A program made the position numbers and the translations under genes. Under the pieces are notes generated by a model. The model did no database searches. It had not been told where the DNA came from and worked only from the letters and a program-made list of their open reading frames with translations. 64,000 bases of DNA from Basidiobolus meristosporus CBS 931.73 (lineage: Eukaryota > Fungi > Basidiobolomycota): positions 1 through 64,000 of the forward strand of contig MCFE01000470.1 of the NCBI GenBank assembly GCA_002104905.1, given 5' to 3'. This document shows positions 2,716 to 62,901 of the stretch, piece after piece; the first letter of the stretch is position 1; each line of letters opens with the position of its first letter.

Positions 2716-5700
2716 TGTTGCAATTCAAGAAGTGATTTAGTTATAAGGAACTTATCAACAAATAGTGATGATAGCTGAGCTGTTGTTTATTAGTAAAGAA
2801 GCTCAGTATTTATACCTCTGTAGAAGCAATACAGCTGTAACACCAAGTAAGGAGGGTTTCCCAATATTTAGGAGCATTCTGTATCAGTTTCAAGGTTATT
2901 AGATAATACTTAGGATTTGTGCTAATTTGATCCTGACTATAGGGGAATTACCATAAGATCCTAGATCTGGTGAAAGTGGCAAAGTTAGAGCTGTAACTTA
3001 GTCATACAGTGACCAGGACTAGTCTAGAATTGCCAAGTAAATATTTAGCTGCAGAATGATACCAAATAGCTCAATATTTCAACACTCCCCCTCAACTAAA
3101 TAATTTCTTAAACCTAATTTGTCCCTGAGATTCTCAAATTGTGGCCTAGCTAGTGGTTTTGTCAATATATCTACCACCATTTTGTTAGTTGGGCAGTACA
3201 CCATCTCCACTAAGTTATTTTCTACATCTTCCCTCACAAAGTGATGTGGTATATCAATGTGCTTAGTTCTGGCATGATTAGTAGGATTTCTAGCTAATGA
3301 AATATAACTTTGATTATCATTGCAAATACATATTGGTTCATCCGAGCTAAGACCAAAGTCTTTGAATAACTTTTGTAGCCATGTAGCCTCCTTAGTTGCT
3401 TGACATGCAGCCATATATTCTGCTTCAGTTGTAGATAGGGCCATAGTTGGTTGTTTCTTGCAATTCCAAGTAATAGCTGCACCAGCATAAAGAAATACAT
3501 AGCCTGTAGTAGAGCATCTGTCAATCAGAACCCTACCCTAGTCTGAATCACCATCACCATCAAATATTTGCCTGTTAGCTGCTGCAGAGTATTCCAGTAC
3601 CATATTTATGGTAGCTTGTTGATATCTAAAAATCTGCTGAACTGCTGCAATTTGATCTGATCCATAATTCTGCATGCATTGACTACTATTTCTACTGTCA
3701 CTGTAATATCTGGACATGTAGGCACTATTAAGTACATTAGGCTTCCAAACATTGATTGATATGGAAAGTCTTGGTCCATATTTGATCCGTTATCATCTAT
3801 TACTGGCTGAAATTTGCTTAATTTCAGGTTATTGTCTTTAGGGGCAGCTGCAGGTTTGCGGTTTTCCATTCAGAAGCATCTAAAAAATGTCTCTCATATA
3901 CTAAAACCAATTCAGCACATTTTCTGCGTAGGTATGTCAGATTAGACCTCAATTGCAAGAAAATGGCTCAATTTTCCAAGATCTTTCATCTCAAACTTGC
4001 TGAAGAGATCTGATTTTGTCTGTTTAAGTGCCTCTTGGTCACTTGTGGCTATAATTAGGTCATTCACATAAAGAACTAGGATTATTACACCCTTTTGGAG
4101 CTGTTTCACATATATACTGTAATCTGCAGTGCTTCAAGAGAACCCAATTTCCTCTAGATATATGTCAATCTTGTAATACCATGATCTAGGTGCCTGCTTA
4201 AGCCCATACAACAATTTTCTAAGTTTGCACACCTTATGTGTGTCTTTTGGATCCGTAAAACCCTCCGGTTGCTCCATATATATAGTTTCTCGCAAATCCC
4301 ATTTAGAAAGGCTGTTTTGATGTCTATTTGGTGTAGATCTACACTGTCCACAGCTGCCAAGGCTAGAACTGTCCTAATGGAGTTAAACCTGCCAACCAGA
4401 GCAAATGTTTCCTTAAAGTCTAGTCCCTGGATTTGGGAATAGCCTTTAGCCACCAATCTAGCCTTGTACTTATCAATGGCACCATTGGAGGTTATCTTGA
4501 ATTTGTAGACCTATCTACATCCTATTGGCTTTCTCTCATTTGGTCAATGTACCAGTTCCTACATTTTTGCCTTGGTCAGTGATTGGTACTCCTCCTGCAT
4601 GGCTTGTTGCCACATAGTAGCATCTGGTTTTGGCATTGCCTGTTCCAGGTTCTGAGGTTTAGCACATAAGGCAAGGTAACCTTCTTCATGATCATTGAAT
4701 GTCGGCCACCAGGATCCAAGGGCATTTCTTATGCCAGTAGATCTCCTAACTGGGATAATCTATTCTAATCTGGAACTGGTAGAAGTGTCTTCTTTATCTG
4801 GCTGGATTTGGTATGTATCTTCTGCATTAGTGTTGATTGCATCATCAGGCAGCTGGCCAATGATTTCTGTGGCTTTCTGATCCAAATTCTCCTCAAATAC
4901 AATGTCCCTGCACTTGATCTGCTTCTGAAGATTGCCATCATACACTCTATCCCTTTAGTGTCATTACAATACCCAAGAAATATCCCTTTCCTACTCATTT
5001 GTTCCAACTTTGAGCGTTTTTTGTCAGGGATGTGATAAAAAACATCACTGCCAAAGATCTTGAGGTGCTGGAGATCTAGTTCCTTGCATGTATATGCTTC
5101 AGAGAGTGTAGAATCAAGTAGTGCTGTTGTTGGGCATCTGTTCTTGGGTATACTGCGGTAGCAACAGTTCAGCTCAAAACTTATAGTCCATTCCCTTATC
5201 ATGTAGCAAAGATCTTCCCATCTCTACTATTGTTCTATTTGCATGTTCTGCTACTTCATTTTGCTGTGGAGTATGAGGAACTGTGGTCTGCTGAGGTATA
5301 CCAATAGATGAGTAGTATCTTGCAAACTCCTTTGAACAGTGTTCTCCTCCATTGTCACTTTGTAGTACCTTCAATTTACACCCAGTTTGTGTTTCTACCA
5401 TATTCTTGAAGTGCTTACACGTCTCTAAAGCCTCATCCTTTGTTTTGAGGAAGTACACCCATGTATATCTTGTTTTGTCATCAACAAACGTCATAAATTA
5501 CCTCTTGGCTCCATATGGGCCATATATGTCTAAGTGTACAATAGCCAATATTTCAGTGGTACTTATGTCTTCTGAGCTCTTGAAACGTTGCCTAGCTTAT
5601 TTGTCAAATGAACATCCCTTGCAAACATTCATTTTGATTGGAGTTGAGTATTTTACAACCAAAACAAGCTGATTTCTCACCAATTGGCTTATTTTCTGTT

Positions 5701-7381
5701 CCCCAATGTGACCTAGCCTTCTATACCACATCTCTGAGTTTGTTTCATCAGTTTCAGCAATGTTGACATACTCAAGTGCAATGAACTTGCATTGTAACTT
5801 GTATAAAATGTGATCTCTGATTTCCAGAGCTGATTTTTGTCCATTCATACTCAATATTGAGCAGCTCATCTTGGTAAAAGCAAATTTCAGTCCCTGAGCA
5901 GTTGCTTTACTGACTGAGAGTAGGTTCTTAGCTATTCCAGGTACATAGAGTACATCAGTGAGTCTTGCTGTTTTTGCCCCTGAGCTATTGCTCATGTTTA
6001 GTTGCATAGACCCACTTGCAGTAGCTTCCAGAGCAGAGGTATAACCCAAATAAACCTTTCTTACTGGAATAGTCTTGAAGTTGCTGAACCTCTCCTTTAT
6101 ACCACAAATATGCTGTGAGGCTCCAGAGTCAATATACCATTCATTAATTTGGTTACTCACACTCTCTTGTACGGTTACAAATAGCTGTTCATCAGTAGTT
6201 ATATGGTTTGCCTGCTCTAGTTTCTGTTTTTTGTCTGCTTGTTTCTTCTTGCATTCTCTTGCCCAGTGTCCTGGCTTTTTACAATAGTTGCAGCAACCAG
6301 GTTTTCTTTGATTTTGCTGCATTTCCTTCTTTTCTGTGTAACTCTCTGAACTGAATGAAGCATTATCTTCAATTTTCTCTGCTTGTTCATTACATCTGAG
6401 TTGTTCATGGAGGAGTCTTCCATTGACATAGTCTAAAGTCAAGTTGTCTTCTCTGCTTTCAAAATAAATAATGAGTGGCTCATACTTGTCTGGTAGGCTG
6501 CAAAGCATACAAAGTATATTTTCTTCATCATCTACACCAGCATTAGTACTGTAAAGTTCTTCTGCAAGTGTCTCCATTTTGGTAATGAGTTGTAGCATGT
6601 CATCATCTGGCCAATTCCTCATGCTGAAGAACTTTTGTTTTAAATAAAGCTTGCTTGATACTGACTTTGCTCTAAAGATCTTCTCTAAGGATTCCCAAGC
6701 TACTTTGGCAGTATATGAGGCATGGATTTGTCCAATGAAGGAATCTTGCACATTGTTACATATGGCATTAAAGGCCTTTTGCTCCTTCTCTTGACACTTC
6801 TCCACTTCTTCTGCTGTTTCTTCAGGCTCACCTTCTTTTCCTGTTACTATATTCCAAAGCTTCCTTTCCTCAGGGTGGATCTGCATCTTGATTCTCCAAA
6901 TTCTGTAGTTTTTTCAATCAAACCTCTCCTTTATAGGGAAAATGTTTTTGTTGTTCTGTTTGCTGGTAGAAGTCATCTTTAGAATAGATTAAGGCAATTG
7001 GGGCTCATAACCTGTTGCAATTTAGGAAGTGATTTGGATATAAGGAACTTTTCAAGAATCAGTGATGATAGTTGAACTGTTGTTTATTAGTAAAGAAGCT
7101 CAGTACTTATACCTTTGTAGAATTATTACAGCTGTAATACTAAGTAAGGAGGATTTCTCAATATTCAGGAGCATTCAGTAACAGTTTCAGGGTTAGTACA
7201 TTATAGTTGGTGTTAGTGTTAATTTGATCCTGACTATAAGGGAATAATCATAAGATCATAGATCCGGAGAAAGTGGCAAAGTTAGAGCTGTAAATTAGTC
7301 CCACAGTGACCAAGACTAGTCCAGAATTGTTAAGTAAATATTTAGCTGCAAAATGATACCAAATAGTCCAATATTTCAAAA
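2716..7381 (-). mobile_element. Full-length but degraded Ty1/copia LTR retrotransposon (copia-1)
   Basis: 369-bp LTRs at 2716-3084 and 7013-7381, roughly 85% identical by eye. 5-bp TSD GAAAC on both sides. PBS GGTTATGAGCCC (7001-7012, minus strand). PPT GAGGGGGAG next to 3084. Confidence 0.95.
3079..6886 (-). pseudogene. Copia gag-pol broken by stops and frameshifts
   Basis: Copia domain order: gag with CNYCKKPGHWAREC knuckle; protease WYIDSGAS; pre-integrase MWYRRLGH; integrase (FVDDKTRYTWVYFLK, LQSDNGGE); RT ([25 protein letters not shown]); RNase H (ALSTTEAEYMA, KHIDIPHHFVRE, DILTKPL). Confidence 0.95.
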
Positions 7382-9237: not shown

Positions 9238-11568
9238 TAGGGATGTCTTCTGGCTTCACCCTAATTTGGTTGTATCCTGACATGAAGTCAATCTTGCTGA
9301 AAATAGTGGCTCCATTGAGTTGGTCCAAGAGCTCATCAATCCAAGGTATGGGGTACTTATTCTTCACAGTAACTGAGTTGAGGGCTCTGAAGTCAATGCA
9401 CATCCTAAGTGCTCCATCCTTCTTCTTCACAAAAAGTACTGGTGCTCCCCAAGGTGACTTGCTGGGTTGGATATATTGTTGCTCCTATAACTGATCTACT
9501 TGTCTCTTCATTTCCTCCAGTTCCAATGGACTCATTCTGTAAGGTGTCTTGCTCACTGGAGGGCTATCTCCTGCTTCAATGGCATGAACCACATCTCTGC
9601 CTGGTGGTAGGCTTACAAGCTCTTCTGGAAATATGTCTGAATACTCCTTCAAAAGAATCTGGACCTTCTGGGGTCCTGGAGTTGAGGAAAGCTCCTGTAA
9701 TACTGCCATGAGGAACATCTGGGTGCCTTTTCTTAGTGCTCTACAGAACTCTGTCTTGCTAAGCTAACTTGTCTCACACACATTGGAATTGACCAAGCTA
9801 AAATCCAGTCTGGCAGGTAATAGCTCATAGGTCTTGTTGTCTTTCTGGATCTGAGTAGCATGGGTTCTCCAGTTGATTGATGGGTTACAACAAAATAGCC
9901 AGGTTTTCCCAAGTATAAGGTCAAACTTGCAGTTCCCAAATATATAGGCATGTAGATCTTCTTCATAGTCATTGATCTTCATCTTTACTGGCTGAGTAAT
10001 ACGGCTGATTATGTAAGAATTCCCATCAGCTGTTGAGACTGAAGTTGATTTGGTGGGCTCCAAGTTGATTCCAGCATTCAGAGCAAATTGCTCTGACATA
10101 TACTCATGTGATGCTCTTGAGTAAATCATGATCTTGGCAGGAACTCCATTGATTACTCCATTCAAGTATAATAGCTTTCCTGAGTTTGAGATCATCTGGG
10201 ATAGGTATTCTTCTGTCATGTGGAAGGTGAGTTCTGAGTCTTCCTCAAGTTCATCCTCTATGTTACTATTCTCCATGGCCTCAATACAGTTAAAGGTTCT
10301 TGATGGCTGGTGTCCATTTCTTTTCTGAGGGCAGTACTTTGCAATATGACCCCGCTGGTGGCAATTGAAGCAAAGTCCTTTCTTCTTACATTCTTCTGTG
10401 GTAGGATTCTTCTACATAGCGTCTATTTCCATTGGCACTGTTTCTGATTGTCTTCTTTCATAGAGATTGTAGCCCCTCTGATTAGTCATTGTGGGCTTCC
10501 CAACTCCAAACATAGCTGAGTCATAGTCAATGGCAATCGTGATGGCTTCCTCAATAGTCTGAGGTCTTCAATAATTCACTTCTTTACAAGTTCTTTCTTT
10601 CAGCCCATCAACAAAGTATTCAGCTAGATCCAGAGGGTCCATTCTTTCAGCTTGCCCAAGTAGATATTTATATTCATAGATGTACTCTTGGACCATTCCT
10701 TTTTGTCTGAGTGTCTTCAACTTTCTTTTTAGTAGTGTCTGTTGGTGTGGGGGCTCAAAGGCATCCTGAATCTCCAACATAAACTCATCCCAGGTAGAGA
10801 CTGTAGAGCATCCCATCATGGTGGCTGACCTGATATTGTTGTGGTACCACTGCAAAGCTGCATCTGCCAAGTAAGAGGCTGCGTAATGTAACTTGTTTTC
10901 TGGAGCAGTTCCTTTAGCTTTAAAAGCTTCTTCAATCTGAAAGAGCCAAGTTCCCAGGTTTTCATTGACTCTGCCATGGTACCAGTTGACCTTCACACTA
11001 AAGTTGCTCTTGACAGGGTTTTGCTGGCTTTGAGCCATGGTAGTCATTCCTTGTTGCTGCTGGTTCAGGATCTGGAATTAGTGTTGCTGCTGGGCCAGGA
11101 TTTGTTGCATATCATTCTTCCATTCTTGATTTGCCAACATCTTGAGGGAGGCTTCTTCTTTCTTCAGGAGGGATGTTTCTGGTTATTGCTGCTACCAATG
11201 TTACAAGTCTTGTTGTAAGAGTTGTAGAGGAATAGGGAGTTTAGCTGGTATTGTATTCACTAAAGCTTGAACTGATCTTTATTGAGATTTCAGCCGCTCC
11301 TTATATACTTTTTTGCCAGATTAATTGCTGACTAATTATATTTCCTAATGTAGGCTGTGGCTGATGACTCATTTGATTGCATCATTATCACCCAATGTGT
11401 TCCTACTTAATATAACTATTTCTGTCTGATAAGTCTCTGCTGACTCATTTGCTGACTAATGCTACTGATTTCACAGATAATACTGATATACTGATAACCT
11501 AAACAAATAACTAATTGATTTGACTAAGAACTGATCCAACTTAAACATTCAAGCAGCAGATCATAAGA
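9238..11568 (-). mobile_element. 3'-truncated Ty3/gypsy element (5' LTR, PBS, gag, protease, start of RT)
   Basis: Family-A LTR at 11199-11568 and PBS TGGTAGCAGC (11188-11197). Gag at 10568-11047, CFNCHQRGHIAKYC knuckle near 10330-10375, decayed protease at 9764-10276. [19 protein letters not shown]...[12 protein letters not shown] breaks off near 9238. Confidence 0.9.
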
Positions 11569-52619: not shown

Positions 52620-53401
52620 AGACCCTACGCATAGAATCAACAACATTGTGGTGGATATTGGTTGCCATCAATCATGCAACTGGCTGGCCAATTGTACGAG
52701 CAGCAATGAATCCAGAGTACCAAGAGATACGGCAAAATCACTCTTATGGGGCATCAGAAATAAAAATGACATGCGTAAACGTACCGAACGAGAATTGGAG
52801 AAATTAAGACACCACCGCCAAGTAGCGGAAGAAGCTCAGAAGCAGGTAGCAATGAAAATGCAACTACACTGAAACCAAGCAGTAAAAGAACGGAAGGATG
52901 AGCTGAAGAAAGGAGACCAGGCATGAATCCGGAATCAAGCGCGAATGAAATTTATGTCAGTTTGACTGGGTCCCTTCAAGATTACTCGAAAGATGCAGCT
53001 TGGAACATGTCAGCTAAAGGAACAGAATGGTCAAAATTTATAGGAATTATATCACGGCAATTGCCTTACAAAGGCATCATACGACATACCAAGCCGAAGA
53101 AGAGCGAATCCAGGAGAATCCTCAAACTTAAGAAGGGAAGAATGTCAAAGACAATACGAATCAAAGGCAACAAGTGAAATATGCACTGATTATAAGAAGG
53201 ATGATCCGAAACAACACTATATAAGCATCTGGATAAGGGTCCAGTATTACACAGATATAACACTACCACAGCTCTGGAGCAGAACAGAATCGTATCACTT
53301 TAGTAAAATAAAGTGTGTCTATTAAACATGTCGAAATTATAAATGGACGCTGGAATTCAAGACAGGCTTCTTTTGGATACTTGATGGATCAGATTCCATA
53401 A
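52620..53401 (+). pseudogene. Relic of an older Ty3/gypsy: integrase fragments, PPT and probable 3' LTR
   Basis: WILVAINHATGWPIVRAA aligns with [44 protein letters not shown] aligns with [40 protein letters not shown] aligns with [18 protein letters not shown] of the adjacent intact element. Purine tract AAGAAGGGAAGAA (53130-53142) is followed by TG. Confidence 0.8.
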
Positions 53402-53760
53402 TTTTCTGTTATGATTTAAATCCTAACTAGTCACTACCGATCACTTGAACACTACTGATCGAACACCTGGAATTCCACACAGACGATCAATCGCACTCAG
53501 TGATACACACGTTATTTAATACATCTTGAACCCTCCTTTTGGAAGCTTGCCCTACGTTATCGGAAGCTCTCCCTCCGAGGCTATCTCTATATAAACTCCT
53601 TTGAACACTATCAATAAAGCATCAACCTTTTACCGGTTCATCAACTATTCAGATAACCTCTCTGATTCGTATTGGACATCCTCCGGTCCTCCTCCGCTTG
53701 CCCTCGATTCATAACATTGGTAGCAGCGAACCTCCGATCTCCAAAAAACAAAAACCTCCG

Positions 53761-53940
53761 TACCTCCCAGAAACTTTTCCAATCTCTCAGAAACTCTTCC
53801 GATCTCCCAGAAACTTTTCCAATCTCTCAGAAACTCTTCCGATCTCCCAGAAACTTTTCCAATCTCTCAGAAACTCTTCCGATCTCCCAGAAACTCTTCC
53901 GATCTCCCAGAAACTCTTCCGATCTCCCAGATATTCTTCC
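53761..53940 (+). repeat. 20-bp tandem repeat x9 in the retrotransposon 5' leader
   Basis: Unit ~GATCTCCCAGAAACTCTTCC. A 40-bp A/B alternation x3 is followed by monomers, with degenerate units on both sides. Confidence 0.95.
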
Positions 53941-54113
53941 AATTGTCCAGAGATACCCTCCGTACCTGCCCGAGACCCTCCCAACCTCCCAGAGAAACCC
54001 TCCGTTTCACTCAAAAAAAGAAAAAAAACAGTACCCAGTCAATTCTGCCAGAGAACCAGCCCCCTTGGTAAACACACCCGCCTACCGCAAATCAAACAAT
54101 ACCCAAAAACAAA

Positions 54114-57100
54114 ATGAGTGAAGAAAAGCCAAAATTTAGCTCTTCAGAAGAAATGTTGGCCTATATTGAGAGTCTTGAACAACAAGTTGCTGAGTTAGCC
54201 GGTCAAGGACAGTCCCACACAACTGAGCCTGCGGCCCTCCCTAGTCTGGACCCAAGAATGGGTAGGCAGACAGACTTGGACTCTTTACATTTTGTGAACA
54301 CCCAGAGATCATGGTTTACTGGTCAAGGTATACAGAGAGAGGGTGAAGCCTCATCTGTAAGACCTGCGGTGCCTCCCAATTCCTTGAATCTTGGAGAAGA
54401 TGGGCAAGGCTCTCTGGACTTCACAAAACAATATAGAGCAACAAATCTGAAACTTCAGAAACCCAACATCTTTGAAGGCAAAAGACACACTGCCACTCTA
54501 GAGACTTGGATATTTGAAGTAGAGCAGTACCTATACTTCTCAGATGACTCTGAAGAAGTCAAAGTACATTATGCCTGTTCACTTTTCAGAAAGGAAGCAA
54601 CCATGTGGTGGAAACTTCACATTCAAGGAATGAATAGGGGCATCTTTCCACCCATAGCCTCCTGGGCTGACTTTGTTAAAGCATTGAGAAAGAGGTTTAC
54701 ACCTATCAATGCTGATAGAATGGCAAGAGAAAAACTGTCCAAACTCTTTCAAGCCAAGTCTGTTCAAGAGTACAATGAGCAGTTTAACTTGCTTAGTATG
54801 GAAATTCAAAACATGCCTGATACTGAACTACTTGAGCAATACCTAAGAGGCCTGAAATCCAACACTAGATGGGAAATTGAATACAAAGACCCCAAAACCC
54901 TAGTAGAGGCTATGGAACTGGCAGAAAGATATGATGCCATACACTTCAGAAGGGCTGTCAACCACAGAATTGGTCACTCAAGAACTACTACAGGCCTCAA
55001 AGCCAATAACCACATACCTATTGGTAGTCAACCAATCACTGAACAAGGTGCACACTACCCCCACACACTGGAGCCTATGGACCTAGATGTTATGCAGAGC
55101 ACACCAAGACCTTCTAAAGAGGAATGCTTCAAGCTTGGACTATGCTTTTACTGCAAGGAACAGGGTCATAAAGTCAATGAATGCCCAAAGAGGCCATTAC
55201 AAAGAGTATTCCAACTCTCCACTAAGGAGGAGGAGCACACAATCAGCCTTGTTAAGGAGTATCAGAGGACTCAGAGCTTATATACTACCCCAAAGATGCT
55301 GAAACTCCCAGGGATTCTCAACAACAACCAATGTGTCTCTGTACTCATTGACAGTGGAGCAACTGATGTCTACATTTCAAAAGATGTAGCTGATCAGATG
55401 AAGCTACAAACAATCCCTTGCCCCCCAATTCACATCCTCTGTGCCACCAAGGAATCAATTATAGTGAACAGCAGGACTGAACCCTTGACTTTACAAATCA
55501 GGGACTTCCAAGACACCATTTCCCCAATTATCATACCCCAAGCCAACTTTGAAATCAATGTGGGACAAACTTGGCTAAGAAAGCACAATCCTGACATAAA
55601 CTGGCAGACTCAGGAAGTTGTAATCAACAAGGATGATGCAAAATATCATCTGTCACCCAAACCAACCCTGGACAAAGGCAATGCACCAGAACACACCATA
55701 TCAAAGAAACAGTTTGCCCACTCTATCAGACAGAATCCCAAACTGTTGCACATGATAGCCTTTGCCAAAATCCAAGAGACCACAGAAGTGACAAATGACA
55801 GGCTCAAGACCTTGTTAGCAGAGTTTCAAGAGGTTTTTCCCAAGGAAATCCCTGCACTACCCCCAAGCAGAGAGATTGACCATGCCATAGAAGTAACAGA
55901 TGATAAACCAAGAAACAGAGCCCCATATAAGTTCTCCCCAAAGGAAATGGAGACTTTGAAGGAAACATTGAAGGACTACCTGGCTAAAGGCTGGATAAAA
56001 CCCAGTAAATCACCATGGGGAGCTCCAGTACTCTTTGCTCCAAAGAAGGATGGGAAGCTACGGTTCTGTGTGGACTACAGGGCCCTAAATGCAATCACTG
56101 TCAGAAATTCCTACCCATTACCAAGAATTGATGCCCTCTTTGACCAACTGGGGAAGGCAAAGATATTCTCTAAAATAGACCTGGCATCTGGATATCACCA
56201 AATCAGAATTAAGCCTGAAGACACCTCTAAGACAGCATTCAACACAAGATATGGTCATTATGAGTTTGTTGTGATGAGCTTTGGCCTGACTAATGCCCCA
56301 GCAACATTTCAGACACTCATGAATAGCATCCTGGAACCATATTTAGAGAAATTTGTCCTGGTCTACTTAGATGACATTCTGATCTATAGTACCAGCATGG
56401 ATGACCACATGAAGCACTTGAAGACAGTACTGGCTATACTAAAAAAGCACAAGCTATATGCACAACTTCCTAAGTGTGAATTCCTCACCAGATCAGTTGA
56501 ATACCTTGGTCACATAATCTCAGATAAAGGACTACACATGGATCCAGCCAAGATAGATGCTATCCAGAAATGGGAAGCCCCAAAGTCACTCACTGAAATG
56601 AGATCCTTCCTGGGACTTGCATCATATTACAGAAGATTCATCAGGGACTTTGCAACTATTGCAGCCCCCCTTACAGACTTGACCAAAAAAGAGAAAGACT
56701 ATATATGGACCCCAAACTGTGAGACAGCTTTCCTAACTCTGAAAGAAAAGCTATGCCAAACCCCTGTGCTTCAGTTGCCTGATTTCTCAGAACCTTTCTG
56801 TGTATACACTGATGCTTCAGATCTAGCTGTTGGAGGGGTACTGACTCAAAAAGAACACCCGGTTGCTTATGAGTCCAAAAAGCTATCAGTAACTGAACAA
56901 AACTACCCAGTCCATGAAAAAGAACTCTATGCCATACTACATTGTCTGAGAGTGTGGAGATGCTACTTGGAGGGCAAACACTTTGTGGTATATACAGATC
57001 ATGCATCCCTAAGATACATTCACACCCAGAAGCTATTATCCAGAAGAATAACTAGATGGATTGAAGAACTACAACAATTTGATTTTAAAATCCACTACCT

Positions 57101-58463
57101 CCCTGGGCCAAAGAATACAGTTGCTGATGCACTCTCAAGGCAACATATATCAATGGTAGATCATGAGTTGGACTGGCCAGAATACATGCCAGAGTACTTG
57201 GCAAGTCAGACAATGCCAGAAGATTTATCACAGGAAGTAAGGGTCAAGATTAAGAAAGAAGCAGAGAATTTCTCATATGGTGAAGACGAGGTACTTTACA
57301 GACACATGGAAGAAATAGGGCCTGTACCATATATTCCATTTGTATACAGAGGTGACATGATAATCAAGAATCATAAAGCCTTTGGACATCTGGGCATCCA
57401 AGGAACTTATGAAATAACTAAAAGGAGAGCCTGGTGGCCTAAACTCAAACAATTTATAGCTGAGACCCTCAAGACCTGCCCTGAGTGCCAGCTGGCTAGA
57501 CCATACAACAAGGAACATGCCCCATTAGAACCACTGACTCCAGTTCCAGCATTCTACAGATGGGGAATTGACTTCATTGGAATATTGCCTGAAACTTCAA
57601 GAGGGAACAAGTGGATCATAACTGCAATTGACCATACCACTAAGTGGTGTATAGCAAAAGCCATGCCAGCAGCTACTGCAAAAAATGTTGCAAAATTCCT
57701 TTACCTGGAAATCTTTATGCAGTTTGGATGCCCAGGTGAAATTCTGTCTGACAGAGGAGCAAACTTTTTGGAACAAACCTTGAAAGAATACCTTCAGATA
57801 ATGGGGGTTAGACATTTGAAGACATCAGCATACCACCCTAGAACAAATGGGGTCACAGAGAGGTTCAATGGACTCTTTGGGAAGATGCTGACTACTTATG
57901 TCAAAGGAGCCAAACATAAGTGGGATGAATTTGTACATCAAGCACTCTTTGCCTGTCGTATTAGAGTCCATTCAGCAACACAAAAGTCCCCCTTCTACCT
58001 AGTGTATGGTACACATCCAAGAATCCCAGGTGATACCTTACCACCATACATCTGGGACTTAAAGAACCAAAAAGACTTGGCAGAATTCAGAACAAGGGAA
58101 CTGGAAGAATTAGGACATGCAAGACATGATGCCATCAAGAATTTAAAACGACAAGCAGAGAAGATGAAAGAACAGTACAACAAAACAGTGGTAACAAAAC
58201 CCTTAACTTTGGGAAAACTTGTATTAGTCCGAAATGAAAGTAGGCTAAAACTAGAACCACATTGGGTTGGACCCTTTATTATCACAAGAGAAATGCCCTT
58301 CAATACATTTCAACTCGCAGACATGTCAGGTAAAGTAAAGGAGGACCTAGTGCATAGAGACCGACTAAAGGAAGCACAGCTAAAAAACCCAATGACACCA
58401 CCAACCAAATACTGGTATTACAAGTCCGATAGACAGGACTCTTCAGGAGAAGAACCTCTTTAA
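54114..58463 (+). CDS. Single-ORF Gag-Pol polyprotein (1449 aa)
   Basis: Gag, [14 protein letters not shown] knuckle, protease LIDSGAT, RT YLDD, RNase H YTDAS...DALSR, integrase H-H-CC plus D,D,E and GPF motif. Gypsy domain order, and no chromodomain after GPF. Confidence 0.98.
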
Positions 58464-58794
58464 GTGTGGGAGTATGTTATGATTTAAATCCTAACTAGTC
58501 ACTACCGATCACTTGAACACTACTGATCGAACACCTGGAATTCCACACAGACGATCAATCGCACTCAGTGATACACACGTTATTTAATACATCTTGAACC
58601 CTCCTTTTGGAAGCTTGCCCTACGTTATCGGAAGCTCTCCCTCCGAGGCTATCTCTATATAAACTCCTTTGAACACTATCAATAAAGCATCAACCTTTTA
58701 CCGGTTCATCAACTATTCAGATAACCTCTCTGATTCGTATTGGACATCCTCCGGTCCTCCTCCGCTTGCCCTCGATTCATAACATTTCCAGGTT

Positions 58795-58866
58795 GGCTCA
58801 ATGGTCTAGTAGTATGATTCCTCGTTCGGGTCGAGGAGGTCCCGGGTTCAATTCCCGGTTGAGCCC
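58795..58866 (+). tRNA. tRNA-Pro, anticodon CGG, intronless
   Basis: Acceptor stem GGCTCAA/TTGAGCC, anticodon stem CCTCG/CGAGG with loop TTCGGGT, T-arm CCGGG-TTCAATT-CCCGG, A-box TGGTCTAGTAG, downstream TTTT terminator at ~58874. Confidence 0.95.
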
Positions 58867-59976
58867 GGTTCACTTTTGCCACTGTTTCATGGAAAGCATC
58901 TCCAGCCAGCGCATTGAAACGAATCCCACGGATGGTCCACTTTCTGGAACACGTGGTGGGTGGAGATTCCAGGTGCCGAGTAGTTGTTGAACAGATTCAT
59001 TCTGGAGGAGAGTTTCCGCAGTGTCGAGTGCCTTCGCTTCCCTCTACCATGGTAGGGATCCTTCGGGGAATGGTTGGACTCCCATATGTACCTGGATGTC
59101 CGTACTTCGACGGGCTCCCGTTTCGAGAAAAAGATCCTCCCCCGTAGCTCCGCAATTTCATCTAAGGCTGGATGACTGGCACCTTCTCAGAAGCCAATCT
59201 CTCATTCAATATATGTATAAACACGCTCTAGGCAGTCATTCCGTTGACTACAGATTACAGATTGAAGAATAGAGGTGAAGCCACATACTTGGTGGGTTTA
59301 AGACTTTCATCTTCGGCAATAACTCGGTAGTTTTACCAAACGGCACATTGGTGATCAGGAGACTGACTACGCCGATGGTTTTTTTTGTGGGTGGGGGTTG
59401 TCGTATGTGAGATTTGCCCTTACCACTCGTGTCTACCCAACACTTCATAGCTCAACCCAAGTCACTCTGAACCTGGCTAAGGGCCAGAGCGTCTTGGTTG
59501 AGGAGATGACTCTATGGCCTATAACTGATCGTGCTTTTCTAAACCGCGACAAATAAACCAGAATATCTTTTGACTTGGTCATTCCCCGCCACAATGCAAT
59601 GCCTCAGATTAAGCAATCAATTTTAGTTTACACGGGCTGTAGCGCATTTTGTGTGATTCCCTGGAGGGAATGCATAATTGCGACTGACCAAAAATAGATC
59701 GTGTCCCTAATTTAGGTGCAATAGTGGACGCAACGGCACAAATAAGGCTGGATCGGTGTCGGCAACCAGTTCCAACCTTGAACACTTGGGTCAAATCAAC
59801 GAGTGACAACACAAGCATGAGATCGGACGCGCCAGGAAGAACCTTCGATGAATTAGCGCATCACCATATGGAGGTAGATTGTACTGAACCTTCGATATTA
59901 TTAATGGTTCACCGGCTCTATAAAAGATTCCTTGCTGCACCCACCTAGTATCATTACCACTACCACTACCATTACC

Positions 59977-60657
59977 ATGAATTCTGAATTACGCGCCAAA
60001 GCCTTCCTTTTCGACCTGGACGGCACGCTAGTCAATACAATCGCCGCTGCAGAGAGGCAGTACACCATCTGGGCCACTAAACTCGGGATCGACCCCAAGC
60101 CGGTGGTTGAATACTGCCACGGGGTCAGAGCAATCGAGGTGATGCAAAAGTTCGCACCCAAGGGGGCGAAGATCACCATTGACGATGCCAACGAGTGGGA
60201 AACTGGGTTCAGCAATGATTCGGAAGGGGTCTTCGTACTCCCAGGCATACCAGAGCTCCTGAAGAAGCTTCCCAAACACCGCTGGGCTATTGTTACTTCG
60301 GGCGTCCGTGCCATGGCTGAAGCAAGACTACGGCAAATGGATCTTCCTGTCCCTGACGTATTCATCACAGCAGACACCGTAACCCGTGGAAAACCTCACC
60401 CCGAAGGATACTTGGCTGCCGCATCCAAGCTTGGTTTCAGGCCCGACGAATGCATCATCTTCGAGGATGCACCGGCCGGAATCGAGGCAGGAGTTAGCGC
60501 CGGGATTCGCACTATCGGTATCACCACTAGCTACAAGCCAGAAACCCTCCACAAAGCGAATGTTCTCATCGATGATTATCATGACATTCTGGTGGAAAAG
60601 TCGGCCAACGAGGAGGAGTTTGAAATCAAGGTGCTAAGAAACAGAAGATCGGATTAA
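59977..60657 (+). CDS. HAD-superfamily sugar/glycerol-phosphate phosphatase (YfbT/Gpp1/Dog1-like), intronless, 226 aa
   Basis: Motif I FDLDGTLV, motif II WAIVTSG, motif III GKPHPEGY, motif IV FEDAPAG. ATG at 59977 in ACCATG context. Confidence 0.93.
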   Translation: MNSELRAKAFLFDLDGTLVNTIAAAERQYTIWATKLGIDPKPVVEYCHGVRAIEVMQKFAPKGAKITIDDANEWETGFSNDSEGVFVLPGIPELLKKLPKHRWAIVTSGVRAMAEARLRQMDLPVPDVFITADTVTRGKPHPEGYLAAASKLGFRPDECIIFEDAPAGIEAGVSAGIRTIGITTSYKPETLHKANVLIDDYHDILVEKSANEEEFEIKVLRNRRSD

Positions 60658-62006: not shown

Positions 62007-62715
62007 AGATAAGGCACGCTGCAATATGTGCGCTGATTAGGGAAGAAATACAAAGGGATTCATTCGGATTCTGGAGATCTAGGCGTCCATCGTTTTGCTT
62101 GGTTCCTCGATGATGTAATAAATACAAAAGTACGCACCTTTTTATTAGCACTTTCAAACCTTCTGGTATCATAGCTCTGTGTCCAAGTGAACATCCAAGC
62201 CAAAGCCAGGCATGAGCATCATTCAAATCTAAAGTGTTATCGTGTTGGATTATGAGTATAGGCGATAATTAATGCACTTATACTGTAGAGCGCTTATATC
62301 GAACTTCAATCAGATGCATGATATCGTTGTTAAAGCATACTGCCCACGGAGAAATAAAGAGGAAGAGAGGATGAATAACGCACCAATAGGCCACAGATAT
62401 CAATCGCACTCCAGGCCAGATGCGGCATTCTTATTCATTTTTTCCGATTATTGCACTTGTTGACCTCGATCATACATCGCGTATCGGTCAAATCCGATCA
62501 GACAAACCGTGGCGCAAATGATTTAAGATACCAAAGACTACGCTGATCTGCACTGTGGATATCGATCGAATCAAGCCGATGGCATAATGTCGCTGAATGA
62601 ATCTAGTCATGAAGCACTCATCATTCATGATGTCACCAGAACCGCACGTCGAGTATATAAGTCTACAAAAGGTTTCCTGCTCTACAGAACATCTATCCAG
62701 CAACCCAGAAACACC

Positions 62716-62901
62716 ATGGACTACGAAGGAAAGAACCCCGGAAATGTTGAGGGAGGCTTCAAGGCTGCTGCCCACAATCCCAATGTCTCAGCTGAGAAGC
62801 AACAAGAGTCACTAGAGAAGGCATCGCAAATCCATGAAGAGCGTACCGGCAAACCGCTGAAGGAGCAAACCATTGAAAAAGAATCCAAGGATTCAAAATA
62901 A
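62716..62901 (+). CDS. con-6: Con-6-like, copy 2 (61 aa)
   Basis: Same motif. ACCATG start aligns with the paralogs. TATATAAG about 60 nt upstream. Confidence 0.9.
   Translation: MDYEGKNPGNVEGGFKAAAHNPNVSAEKQQESLEKASQIHEERTGKPLKEQTIEKESKDSK

Follow-up and report, generated by a model that had tools for sequence, protein, structure and literature searches.

A young Ty3/gypsy element immediately upstream of a tRNA-Pro gene in Basidiobolus meristosporus and the case for targeting to Pol III start sites

The first 64,000 nucleotides of Basidiobolus meristosporus CBS 931.73 contig MCFE01000470.1 (the whole stretch analysed, here called the window) contain an intact Ty3/gypsy long terminal repeat (LTR) retrotransposon of 5,378 bp, at 53407-58784, that ends 10 nt before a tRNA-Pro(CGG) gene and lies in the same orientation as that gene. 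We propose, with a probability of about three in four, that this is a transposition-competent element whose integrase is guided to the RNA polymerase III (Pol III) initiation complex on tRNA genes. Pol III targeting had been suggested in an earlier note made from the sequence of the window. The idea is well, though indirectly, supported by the position of a very young, polymorphic insertion beside the tRNA gene, by an older relic stacked before the same gene and by all six copies of a related family read in Entomortierella parvispora; the note's reading as a whole, in which the Basidiobolus family targets tRNA upstream regions as an unmethylated safe haven, is partly supported. The targeting habit as such is known from other elements; what is new is the apparently active copy, its polymorphic empty site, and a clearly targeted related family in a second phylum.

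Element and insertion site

The element has direct LTRs bounded by TG...CA, a primer-binding site (PBS), a polypurine tract and a short target-site duplication (TSD), and its Pfam domains follow the Metaviridae order of gag, protease, reverse transcriptase (RT), RNase H and integrase (IN). By these sequence features it is a Ty3/gypsy (Metaviridae) LTR retrotransposon. Its parts and its target, including the single gag-pol open reading frame (ORF), are as follows, in window coordinates.

53403-53406, + strand: left TSD, TTTC (from the sequence and the empty-site contigs)
53407-53716, + strand: 5' LTR, 310 bp, TGTTATG...CATAACA (LTR self-comparison)
53588-53595, + strand: TATATAAA in the 5' LTR (consensus match only)
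53613-53618, + strand: AATAAA in the 5' LTR (consensus match only)
53718-53732, + strand: putative PBS TGGTAGCAGCGAACC, 1 nt past the 5' LTR
53764-53943 (wider limits 53724-54005), + strand: tandem repeat array in the 5' leader, between PBS and gag
54114-58463, + strand: single gag-pol ORF, 1,449 amino acids (aa), without a stop
54441-54950, + strand: gag capsid, Ty3_capsid / Retrotrans_gag (Pfam)
55140-55190, + strand: CCHC knuckle (Pfam)
55314-55637, + strand: aspartic protease (Pfam)
56040-56519, + strand: reverse transcriptase (Pfam)
56706-57080, + strand: RNase H (Pfam)
57192-58373, + strand: integrase with NED and a long helix (Pfam, phmmer, AlphaFold, Foldseek)
57348-57503, + strand: integrase HHCC zinc domain
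57555-57839, + strand: integrase catalytic core
58218-58373, + strand: integrase SH3-like C-terminal domain (CTD)
58374-58460, + strand: integrase C-terminal tail, 29 aa, predicted disordered (AlphaFold model)
58464-58474, + strand: polypurine-like tract GTGTGGGAGTA, directly before the 3' LTR
58475-58784, + strand: 3' LTR, identical to the 5' LTR
58785-58788, + strand: right TSD, TTTC, at -10 to -7 from the mature tRNA 5' end
58789-58794, + strand: spacer CAGGTT, six bases between TSD and tRNA
58795-58866, + strand: tRNA-Pro(CGG) gene (ARAGORN; Rfam, 56 bits)
58874-58877, + strand: TTTT terminator run, 8 nt downstream of the tRNA gene

The earlier note had described the element as active-looking, with an intact ORF and LTRs that look identical, and this description holds in each respect. 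Both LTRs are 310 bp long and 100% identical, the gag-pol frame is open over all 1,449 codons, and every domain from gag to IN is present. It is also the sole intact element in the window, where the only other ORFs of at least 250 aa are two fragments of copia gag and where positions 1-46000 show a CpG observed/expected ratio (o/e) of 0.07. The 4-bp TSD and the single gag-pol ORF are both unlike the Ty3 lineage proper, which has a 5-bp TSD and a +1 frameshift.

The putative PBS TGGTAGCAGCGAACC complements a tRNA 3' end of the form ...CGCUGCUACCA and would fit a tRNA with an A1:U72 pair, that is, an initiator-Met-like acceptor end. Self-priming of the Tf1 type was considered and ruled out for this element because its LTR contains no complement of the PBS. 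The leader array that follows consists of about nine tandem copies of a 20-nt unit, organized as a 40-nt super-unit with 95% matches.

The tRNA-Pro gene is the sole tRNA gene in the whole window, on which ARAGORN and Rfam agree. ARAGORN, Rfam and the sequence likewise give exactly the spacing stated in the earlier note: the 3' LTR ends at 58784 and the tRNA starts at 58795, with only the 4-bp TSD and six further nucleotides between them. This is well inside the limit of about 20 bp upstream of the mature end that marks the class of elements targeting Pol III start sites.

Empty site, older relic and related families

Logan contigs from four sequencing runs (X1-X4) were aligned to positions 53250-58950. 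Runs X2, X3 and X4 represent one sample (“organism B”), X2 at low coverage, and X1 represents “organism A”. In X3 and X4 a contig runs from 53402 straight on to 58785 and skips the 5,382 bp in between, with four letters that fit both sides. The skipped length is that of the element plus one TSD copy, which makes the contig an exact empty site with a single TTTC and confirms the 4-bp TSD independently. Since excision of LTR elements is not precise, the empty allele represents the ancestral state. The insertion at tRNA-Pro is polymorphic and, with its identical LTRs, very young.

The same runs bear on copy number. Element-internal contigs in X3 and X4 reach depths of ~5,800-7,300 versus ~210 for the single-copy flank, and dozens of element contigs there are 90-99% variants; X2 assembled nearly the whole element and little else. 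In X1 the 3' junction is filled (contig 58755-58950, at a depth of 87), and the element reaches a depth of 239. Contig depth is not copy number, and read as orders of magnitude only these values give a few element copies in the X1 sample and tens in the X2-X4 sample. A joint in X2 that goes back 5068 was considered as a sign of circular or tandem forms and set aside, being best explained by assembly collapse of the identical LTRs at low coverage. Separately, X1 unitigs break at the leader tandem array, where depth is higher.

Immediately upstream of the element lies the relic of an older, distinct Ty3/gypsy relative.

52652-53401, + strand: relic, in the same orientation as the intact element
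~53130-53142, + strand: putative polypurine tract of the relic, followed by a decayed 3' LTR

Its coding part (52652-53076) is a scrap of the IN core fused to an IN C-terminus, with three in-frame stops and an internal deletion. In tblastn and blastx the C-terminal portion matches the intact element at aa 1302-1421 with 34% identity, and among all gathered proteins this element is its best match, narrowly above a Calcarisporiella protein. The ~330 bp past the coding part hold a purine tract with TG (~53130-53145), TATATAA and AATAAA, the latter two with a spacing that resembles that of the new LTR. Candidate ends for the relic LTR are 53391, 53398 and 53401-53402, the alignment of old with new LTR being too poor to fix the last base; in the empty allele this end is 10-21 nt from the tRNA. 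The relic occurs in both samples, differing by one substitution and a 2-bp indel. Two distinct families have therefore inserted before the same tRNA gene, both in the same orientation and no more than about 10 nt apart. The younger element sits between the relic and the gene, and such younger-nearest stacking is the pattern expected if distance is set from the gene.

A possible objection is that the element landed beside the tRNA by chance, or that the tRNA is part of the element or carried by it, and this family is indeed known directly from a single copy. A carried tRNA is contradicted by the empty allele, which keeps both tRNA and relic without the element, and by the TSD, which excludes the tRNA. 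If the genome is assumed to measure tens of Mb and to hold a few hundred tRNA genes, a random hit no more than 20 nt upstream of one has a chance of about 1 in 10,000, and the second family at the same spot makes coincidence negligible. We give this explanation almost no credence.

Turning to relatives, we found no exact protein record for the 1,449-aa product, and homology searches with the full protein or with RT-RNase H alone returned no Basidiobolus copies, the best matches (49-61%) coming from metagenomes or plants. The closest database proteins are only 40-49% identical to the window protein. A maximum-likelihood tree of RT-RNase H-IN, which left out Ty3, Tj1, Ylt1 and DGLT-A, places the element in a clade with a Shimodaira-Hasegawa-like approximate likelihood ratio test (SH-aLRT) value of 100 and a branch length of 0.92. 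This clade, whose members have no chromodomain, stands apart from chromoviruses and plant elements; the window protein itself has no Pfam match to the chromodomain PF00385, the mark of chromoviruses. Members of the clade are proteins from Calcarisporiella, Absidia, Entomortierella and Rotaria along with many metagenome contigs, and the Basidiobolus element is a deep, unresolved branch within it. No tRNA was found in the available DNA of 29 metagenome relatives (26-50% identity), which served as a control, and adjacency to tRNA genes is thus not general to gypsy elements. The members in Rotaria spp. assemblies (L002-L005) are 41-47% identical to the fungal clade and nest among soil-metagenome sequences; they may reflect horizontal transfer or contamination. 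Two JGI metagenome contigs (L001 and L043) exceed one unit and repeat every 4,403 and 5,823 nt, a period made up of the internal region and a single LTR; this looks like LTR assembly collapse, one-LTR circles or tandem arrays. Being unit-length concatemers without flanks, they were rejected as target-site evidence.

The most informative relative is a family of Entomortierella parvispora, of which we read six genomic copies (loci L006-L011, assembly GCA_020891255.1, P0045 cluster). It is 41% identical to the window element and belongs to the same chromodomain-less clade. Its copies are 5.5-6.1 kb long, with near-identical 608-bp LTRs (TGTCGTGA...TCACGACA), a PBS beginning TGGTAGCA... and a polypurine-like tract, CTGTGGGGGGAG, similar to that in the window. 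The TSDs are 4 bp long and unrelated in sequence (GGAA, TGGA, TCTA, ATTT, AAGT and one imperfect). In six of six copies a tRNA gene, the only one at each locus, adjoins the 5' LTR head-to-head, that is, on the opposite strand; the targets are Leu-AAG, Asn-GTT (twice), Glu-CTC, Leu-CAA and Ser-AGA. Five copies leave 14-15 nt between LTR and tRNA, and the sixth leaves 34 nt. This is unambiguous, orientation-fixed tRNA targeting. The 34-nt copy (L007:3099-3206) adjoins a tRNA-Asn, and the same tRNA species in L009 has a gap of 14 nt.

The two families share the 4-bp TSD, the TGGTAGCA... PBS, near-identical LTRs and an apparently fixed orientation beside the tRNA gene, but in Entomortierella it is the 5' LTR that faces the tRNA at 14-15 nt, whereas in the window it is the 3' LTR, with the element forward, at 10 nt. 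Directly after the TSD comes CA, both in the window and at three of the six Entomortierella sites. CA is a typical Pol III initiator, and the CA after the window TSD is a plausible Pol III start. If the A is the start, both families would cut 1-5 nt upstream of it, and the different distances to the mature tRNA end would reflect leader length.

Could such a pattern arise without targeting, from near-random insertion in which only copies in harmless sites, or copies that escape a CpG-erasing repeat defense, survive? Intact copies would indeed be expected to persist best outside the repeat compartment, and the CpG o/e differs as this explanation predicts, at 0.07 in 1-46000 versus 0.72 in the relic beside the tRNA (host flanks ~0.8). 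Yet selection cannot produce nucleotide-level precision together with fixed orientation, and selection can have had little time to act on an insertion that is still polymorphic and has identical LTRs. The placement of two families within ~10 nt of each other and the shared 14-15 nt gap in five of six Entomortierella copies with near-identical LTRs likewise argue for targeting, and we consider its absence very improbable. The CpG retained by the relic does offer a hint, from base composition, that the vicinity of the tRNA may be an unmethylated safe haven.

Integrase, tether and known systems

The window integrase aligns to the Ty3 integrase (7Q5B) from the NED through the end of the SH3 domain (phmmer E 1.4e-25). 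Its AlphaFold model, with a predicted local distance difference test score (pLDDT) of 86, has the NED, HHCC domain, catalytic core, a 40-residue helix, an SH3-like barrel and a disordered 29-residue tail, and Foldseek matches the model to prototype foamy virus (PFV) and Ty3 intasome chains (7Q5B E 6e-20). The alignment with 7Q5B stops at the SH3 domain and only 29 residues are left, so the vestigial chromodomain of Ty3 is missing. In Ty3 the SH3-like CTD of an outer integrase subunit touches TBP and the vestigial chromodomain (IN 440-504) touches Brf1 (PMC8632968), and integration occurs 1-4 bp from the Pol III start site (PMC5911963). There being no room for a chromodomain, the SH3 domain, the helix and the short tail are the parts of the Basidiobolus integrase left to contact TFIIIB, if TFIIIB is the tether; in Ty1, short integrase tails act as targeting peptides (PMC7459421).

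In the mechanism we picture, the integrase would be guided to the Pol III initiation complex at tRNA genes. Strand transfer, staggered by 4 bp, would occur a few bases before the Pol III start and span -10 to -7 relative to the mature tRNA end. The element lies in the tRNA's own direction. The tether would most likely be TFIIIB (TBP/Brf1), contacted by the SH3-like CTD and/or the short tail much as in Ty3 but without the chromodomain-Brf1 link. Tethering to the Pol III initiation complex is, in our estimation, highly probable. Given such tethering, the choice of TFIIIB as partner, for which Ty3 is the analogy, is moderately favored. We infer the tether partner, the start-site position and the targeting by other copies of this family.

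The tRNA gene might alternatively be recognized through another tether: TFIIIC, in the style of the contact between DGLT-A RNase H and Tfc4, or a Pol III subunit, in the style of Ty1 integrase and AC40. The integrase does lack the Brf1-contacting chromodomain of Ty3, convergent mechanisms are documented (PMC6101501, PMC5911963), and fixed orientation suggests an asymmetric contact, TFIIIC being known to influence Ty3 orientation (PMC5911963). Tethering of the Ty1 type, however, spreads insertions over ~1 kb, and DGLT-A inserts 13-33 bp upstream in either orientation (PMC5911963), whereas the window position is tight and near the start site, as for the TFIIIB-guided Ty3 and for Tj1. The SH3 CTD, which touches TBP in Ty3, is moreover conserved in fold. 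We regard another tether as unlikely and keep TFIIIB as the preferred partner.

Several points weigh against the proposal that this element is guided to Pol III initiation complexes. At the window locus itself n is 1-2, too few to prove a fixed orientation. Of the copies implied by depth, a single one of the family with the 310-bp LTR was read, alongside one relic of another family. Without the Brf1-contacting chromodomain, the Ty3 mechanism is not fully transferable. Within the same clade the Rotaria family has no tRNA in contigs of 12-16 kb, nor is there one at L041 and L042, so targeting is not a clade-wide trait. Lastly, the window holds 46 kb of dead elements, including a gypsy relative at 9245-11068, far from tRNA genes.

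LTR elements with Pol III genes as targets have been published from Saccharomycotina, Schizosaccharomyces japonicus and dictyostelids (PMC5911963). For Basidiobolus, Mortierella, Mucoromycota or Zoopagomycota, our literature search turned up no report of targeting to tRNA genes. The best match in behavior, judged by position and orientation as described in the literature, is Tj1 of S. japonicus. Like the window element, Tj1 is a Ty3/gypsy element of ~5 kb with identical LTRs in its full-length copy, lying forward upstream of tRNA genes (PMC4600332). In Schizosaccharomyces pombe its insertions fell 5-11 bp before the mature tRNA end, or 1-10 bp before the predicted start, and always followed the tRNA orientation (PMC4600332). 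The window TSD at -10 to -7 falls in the -5 to -11 range, and element and relic are both forward (n = 1-2). The two differ in that Tj1 has a 5-bp TSD, a stop codon between gag and pol and a fission yeast host, as against a 4-bp TSD, a single ORF and an early-diverging fungus here.

Ty3 of Saccharomyces cerevisiae (PMC8632968, PMC5911963) shares with the window element a position near the Pol III start upstream of tRNA genes, an initiator-tRNA-like PBS and an integrase with NED, N-terminal domain, catalytic core domain and SH3 domain. It differs in its ~100 further residues, which form the vestigial Brf1-binding chromodomain (a 29-aa disordered tail in the window), and in its 5-bp TSD, +1 gag/pol frameshift and insertion in both orientations. 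The Dictyostelium elements DGLT-A and Skipper-2 (PMC5006619, PMC6101501) are also Ty3/gypsy elements that use tRNA genes as safe sites, and DGLT-A has a single ORF like the window element; both live in an amoebozoan host, however, DGLT-A inserting 13-33 bp upstream in either orientation with its RNase H binding the TFIIIC subunit Tfc4, and Skipper-2 inserting downstream of tRNA genes. Ylt1, Tyl3 and Tyl6 of Yarrowia and beta/Tca8 of Candida (PMC5911963), again compared by description, are Ty3/gypsy elements found a few bp upstream of tRNA starts, all in Saccharomycotina; Ylt1-like elements are the known non-chromoviral gypsy group of fungi (PMC3248453).

Integrases of the Entomortierella subclade carry a conserved C-terminal extension of 100-170 aa, with the motifs DNSDDGLP and PMMGSAA.AAR.YR and no Pfam match, which is a candidate targeting domain. 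More tentatively, and with the odds somewhat against it, a chromodomain-less Ty3/gypsy clade of early-diverging fungi (Basidiobolus, Mortierellomycota) may have come to integrate at Pol III start sites, in a locked orientation, on an evolutionary path separate from those of Ty3 and Tj1 and by way of different integrase surfaces: the SH3 domain and short tail in Basidiobolus, and the new extension in Entomortierella. The Basidiobolus element would then be currently active, with a copy number that varies between strains, and could for that reason become a convenient new system for the study of targeted integration.

Integration at Pol III genes is the textbook example of how a mobile element reaches a safe site. 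The active-looking Basidiobolus element and the clearly targeted Entomortierella family carry this habit into two early-diverging phyla of fungi whose genomes are larger and rich in repeats. An integrase without a chromodomain allows a natural comparison of how frequently, and through which contacts, such specificity evolves, and integrases that are precise and fixed in orientation are of interest as site-directed insertion tools.

Other sequence in the window

Within the CpG-depleted block three remains of other elements were recognized, the first two being the copia fragments mentioned above.

5597-6886, - strand: copia-type gag/pre-integrase ORF fragment, 429 aa
40512-41861, - strand: copia-type gag/pre-integrase ORF fragment, 449 aa
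9245-11068, - strand: decayed gypsy relative, 32% identical to aa 91-703 of the intact element

The intact element is itself uneven in composition. Its gag-pol ORF has a CpG o/e of 0.06 (12 CpG in 4,350 bp), and its LTR and 5' leader have values of 1.08 and 0.87. This pattern suggests CpG loss in a transcribed body under purifying selection, with the promoter protected.

Downstream of the tRNA gene the sequence returns to a CpG-normal host region. An ORF at 59932-60654 encodes a HAD phosphatase that is 100% identical to a B. meristosporus CBS 931.73 protein and 70% identical to one of B. ranarum, and beside it an ORF at 62587-62901 (+ strand) contains a Con-6 (conidiation protein 6) domain.

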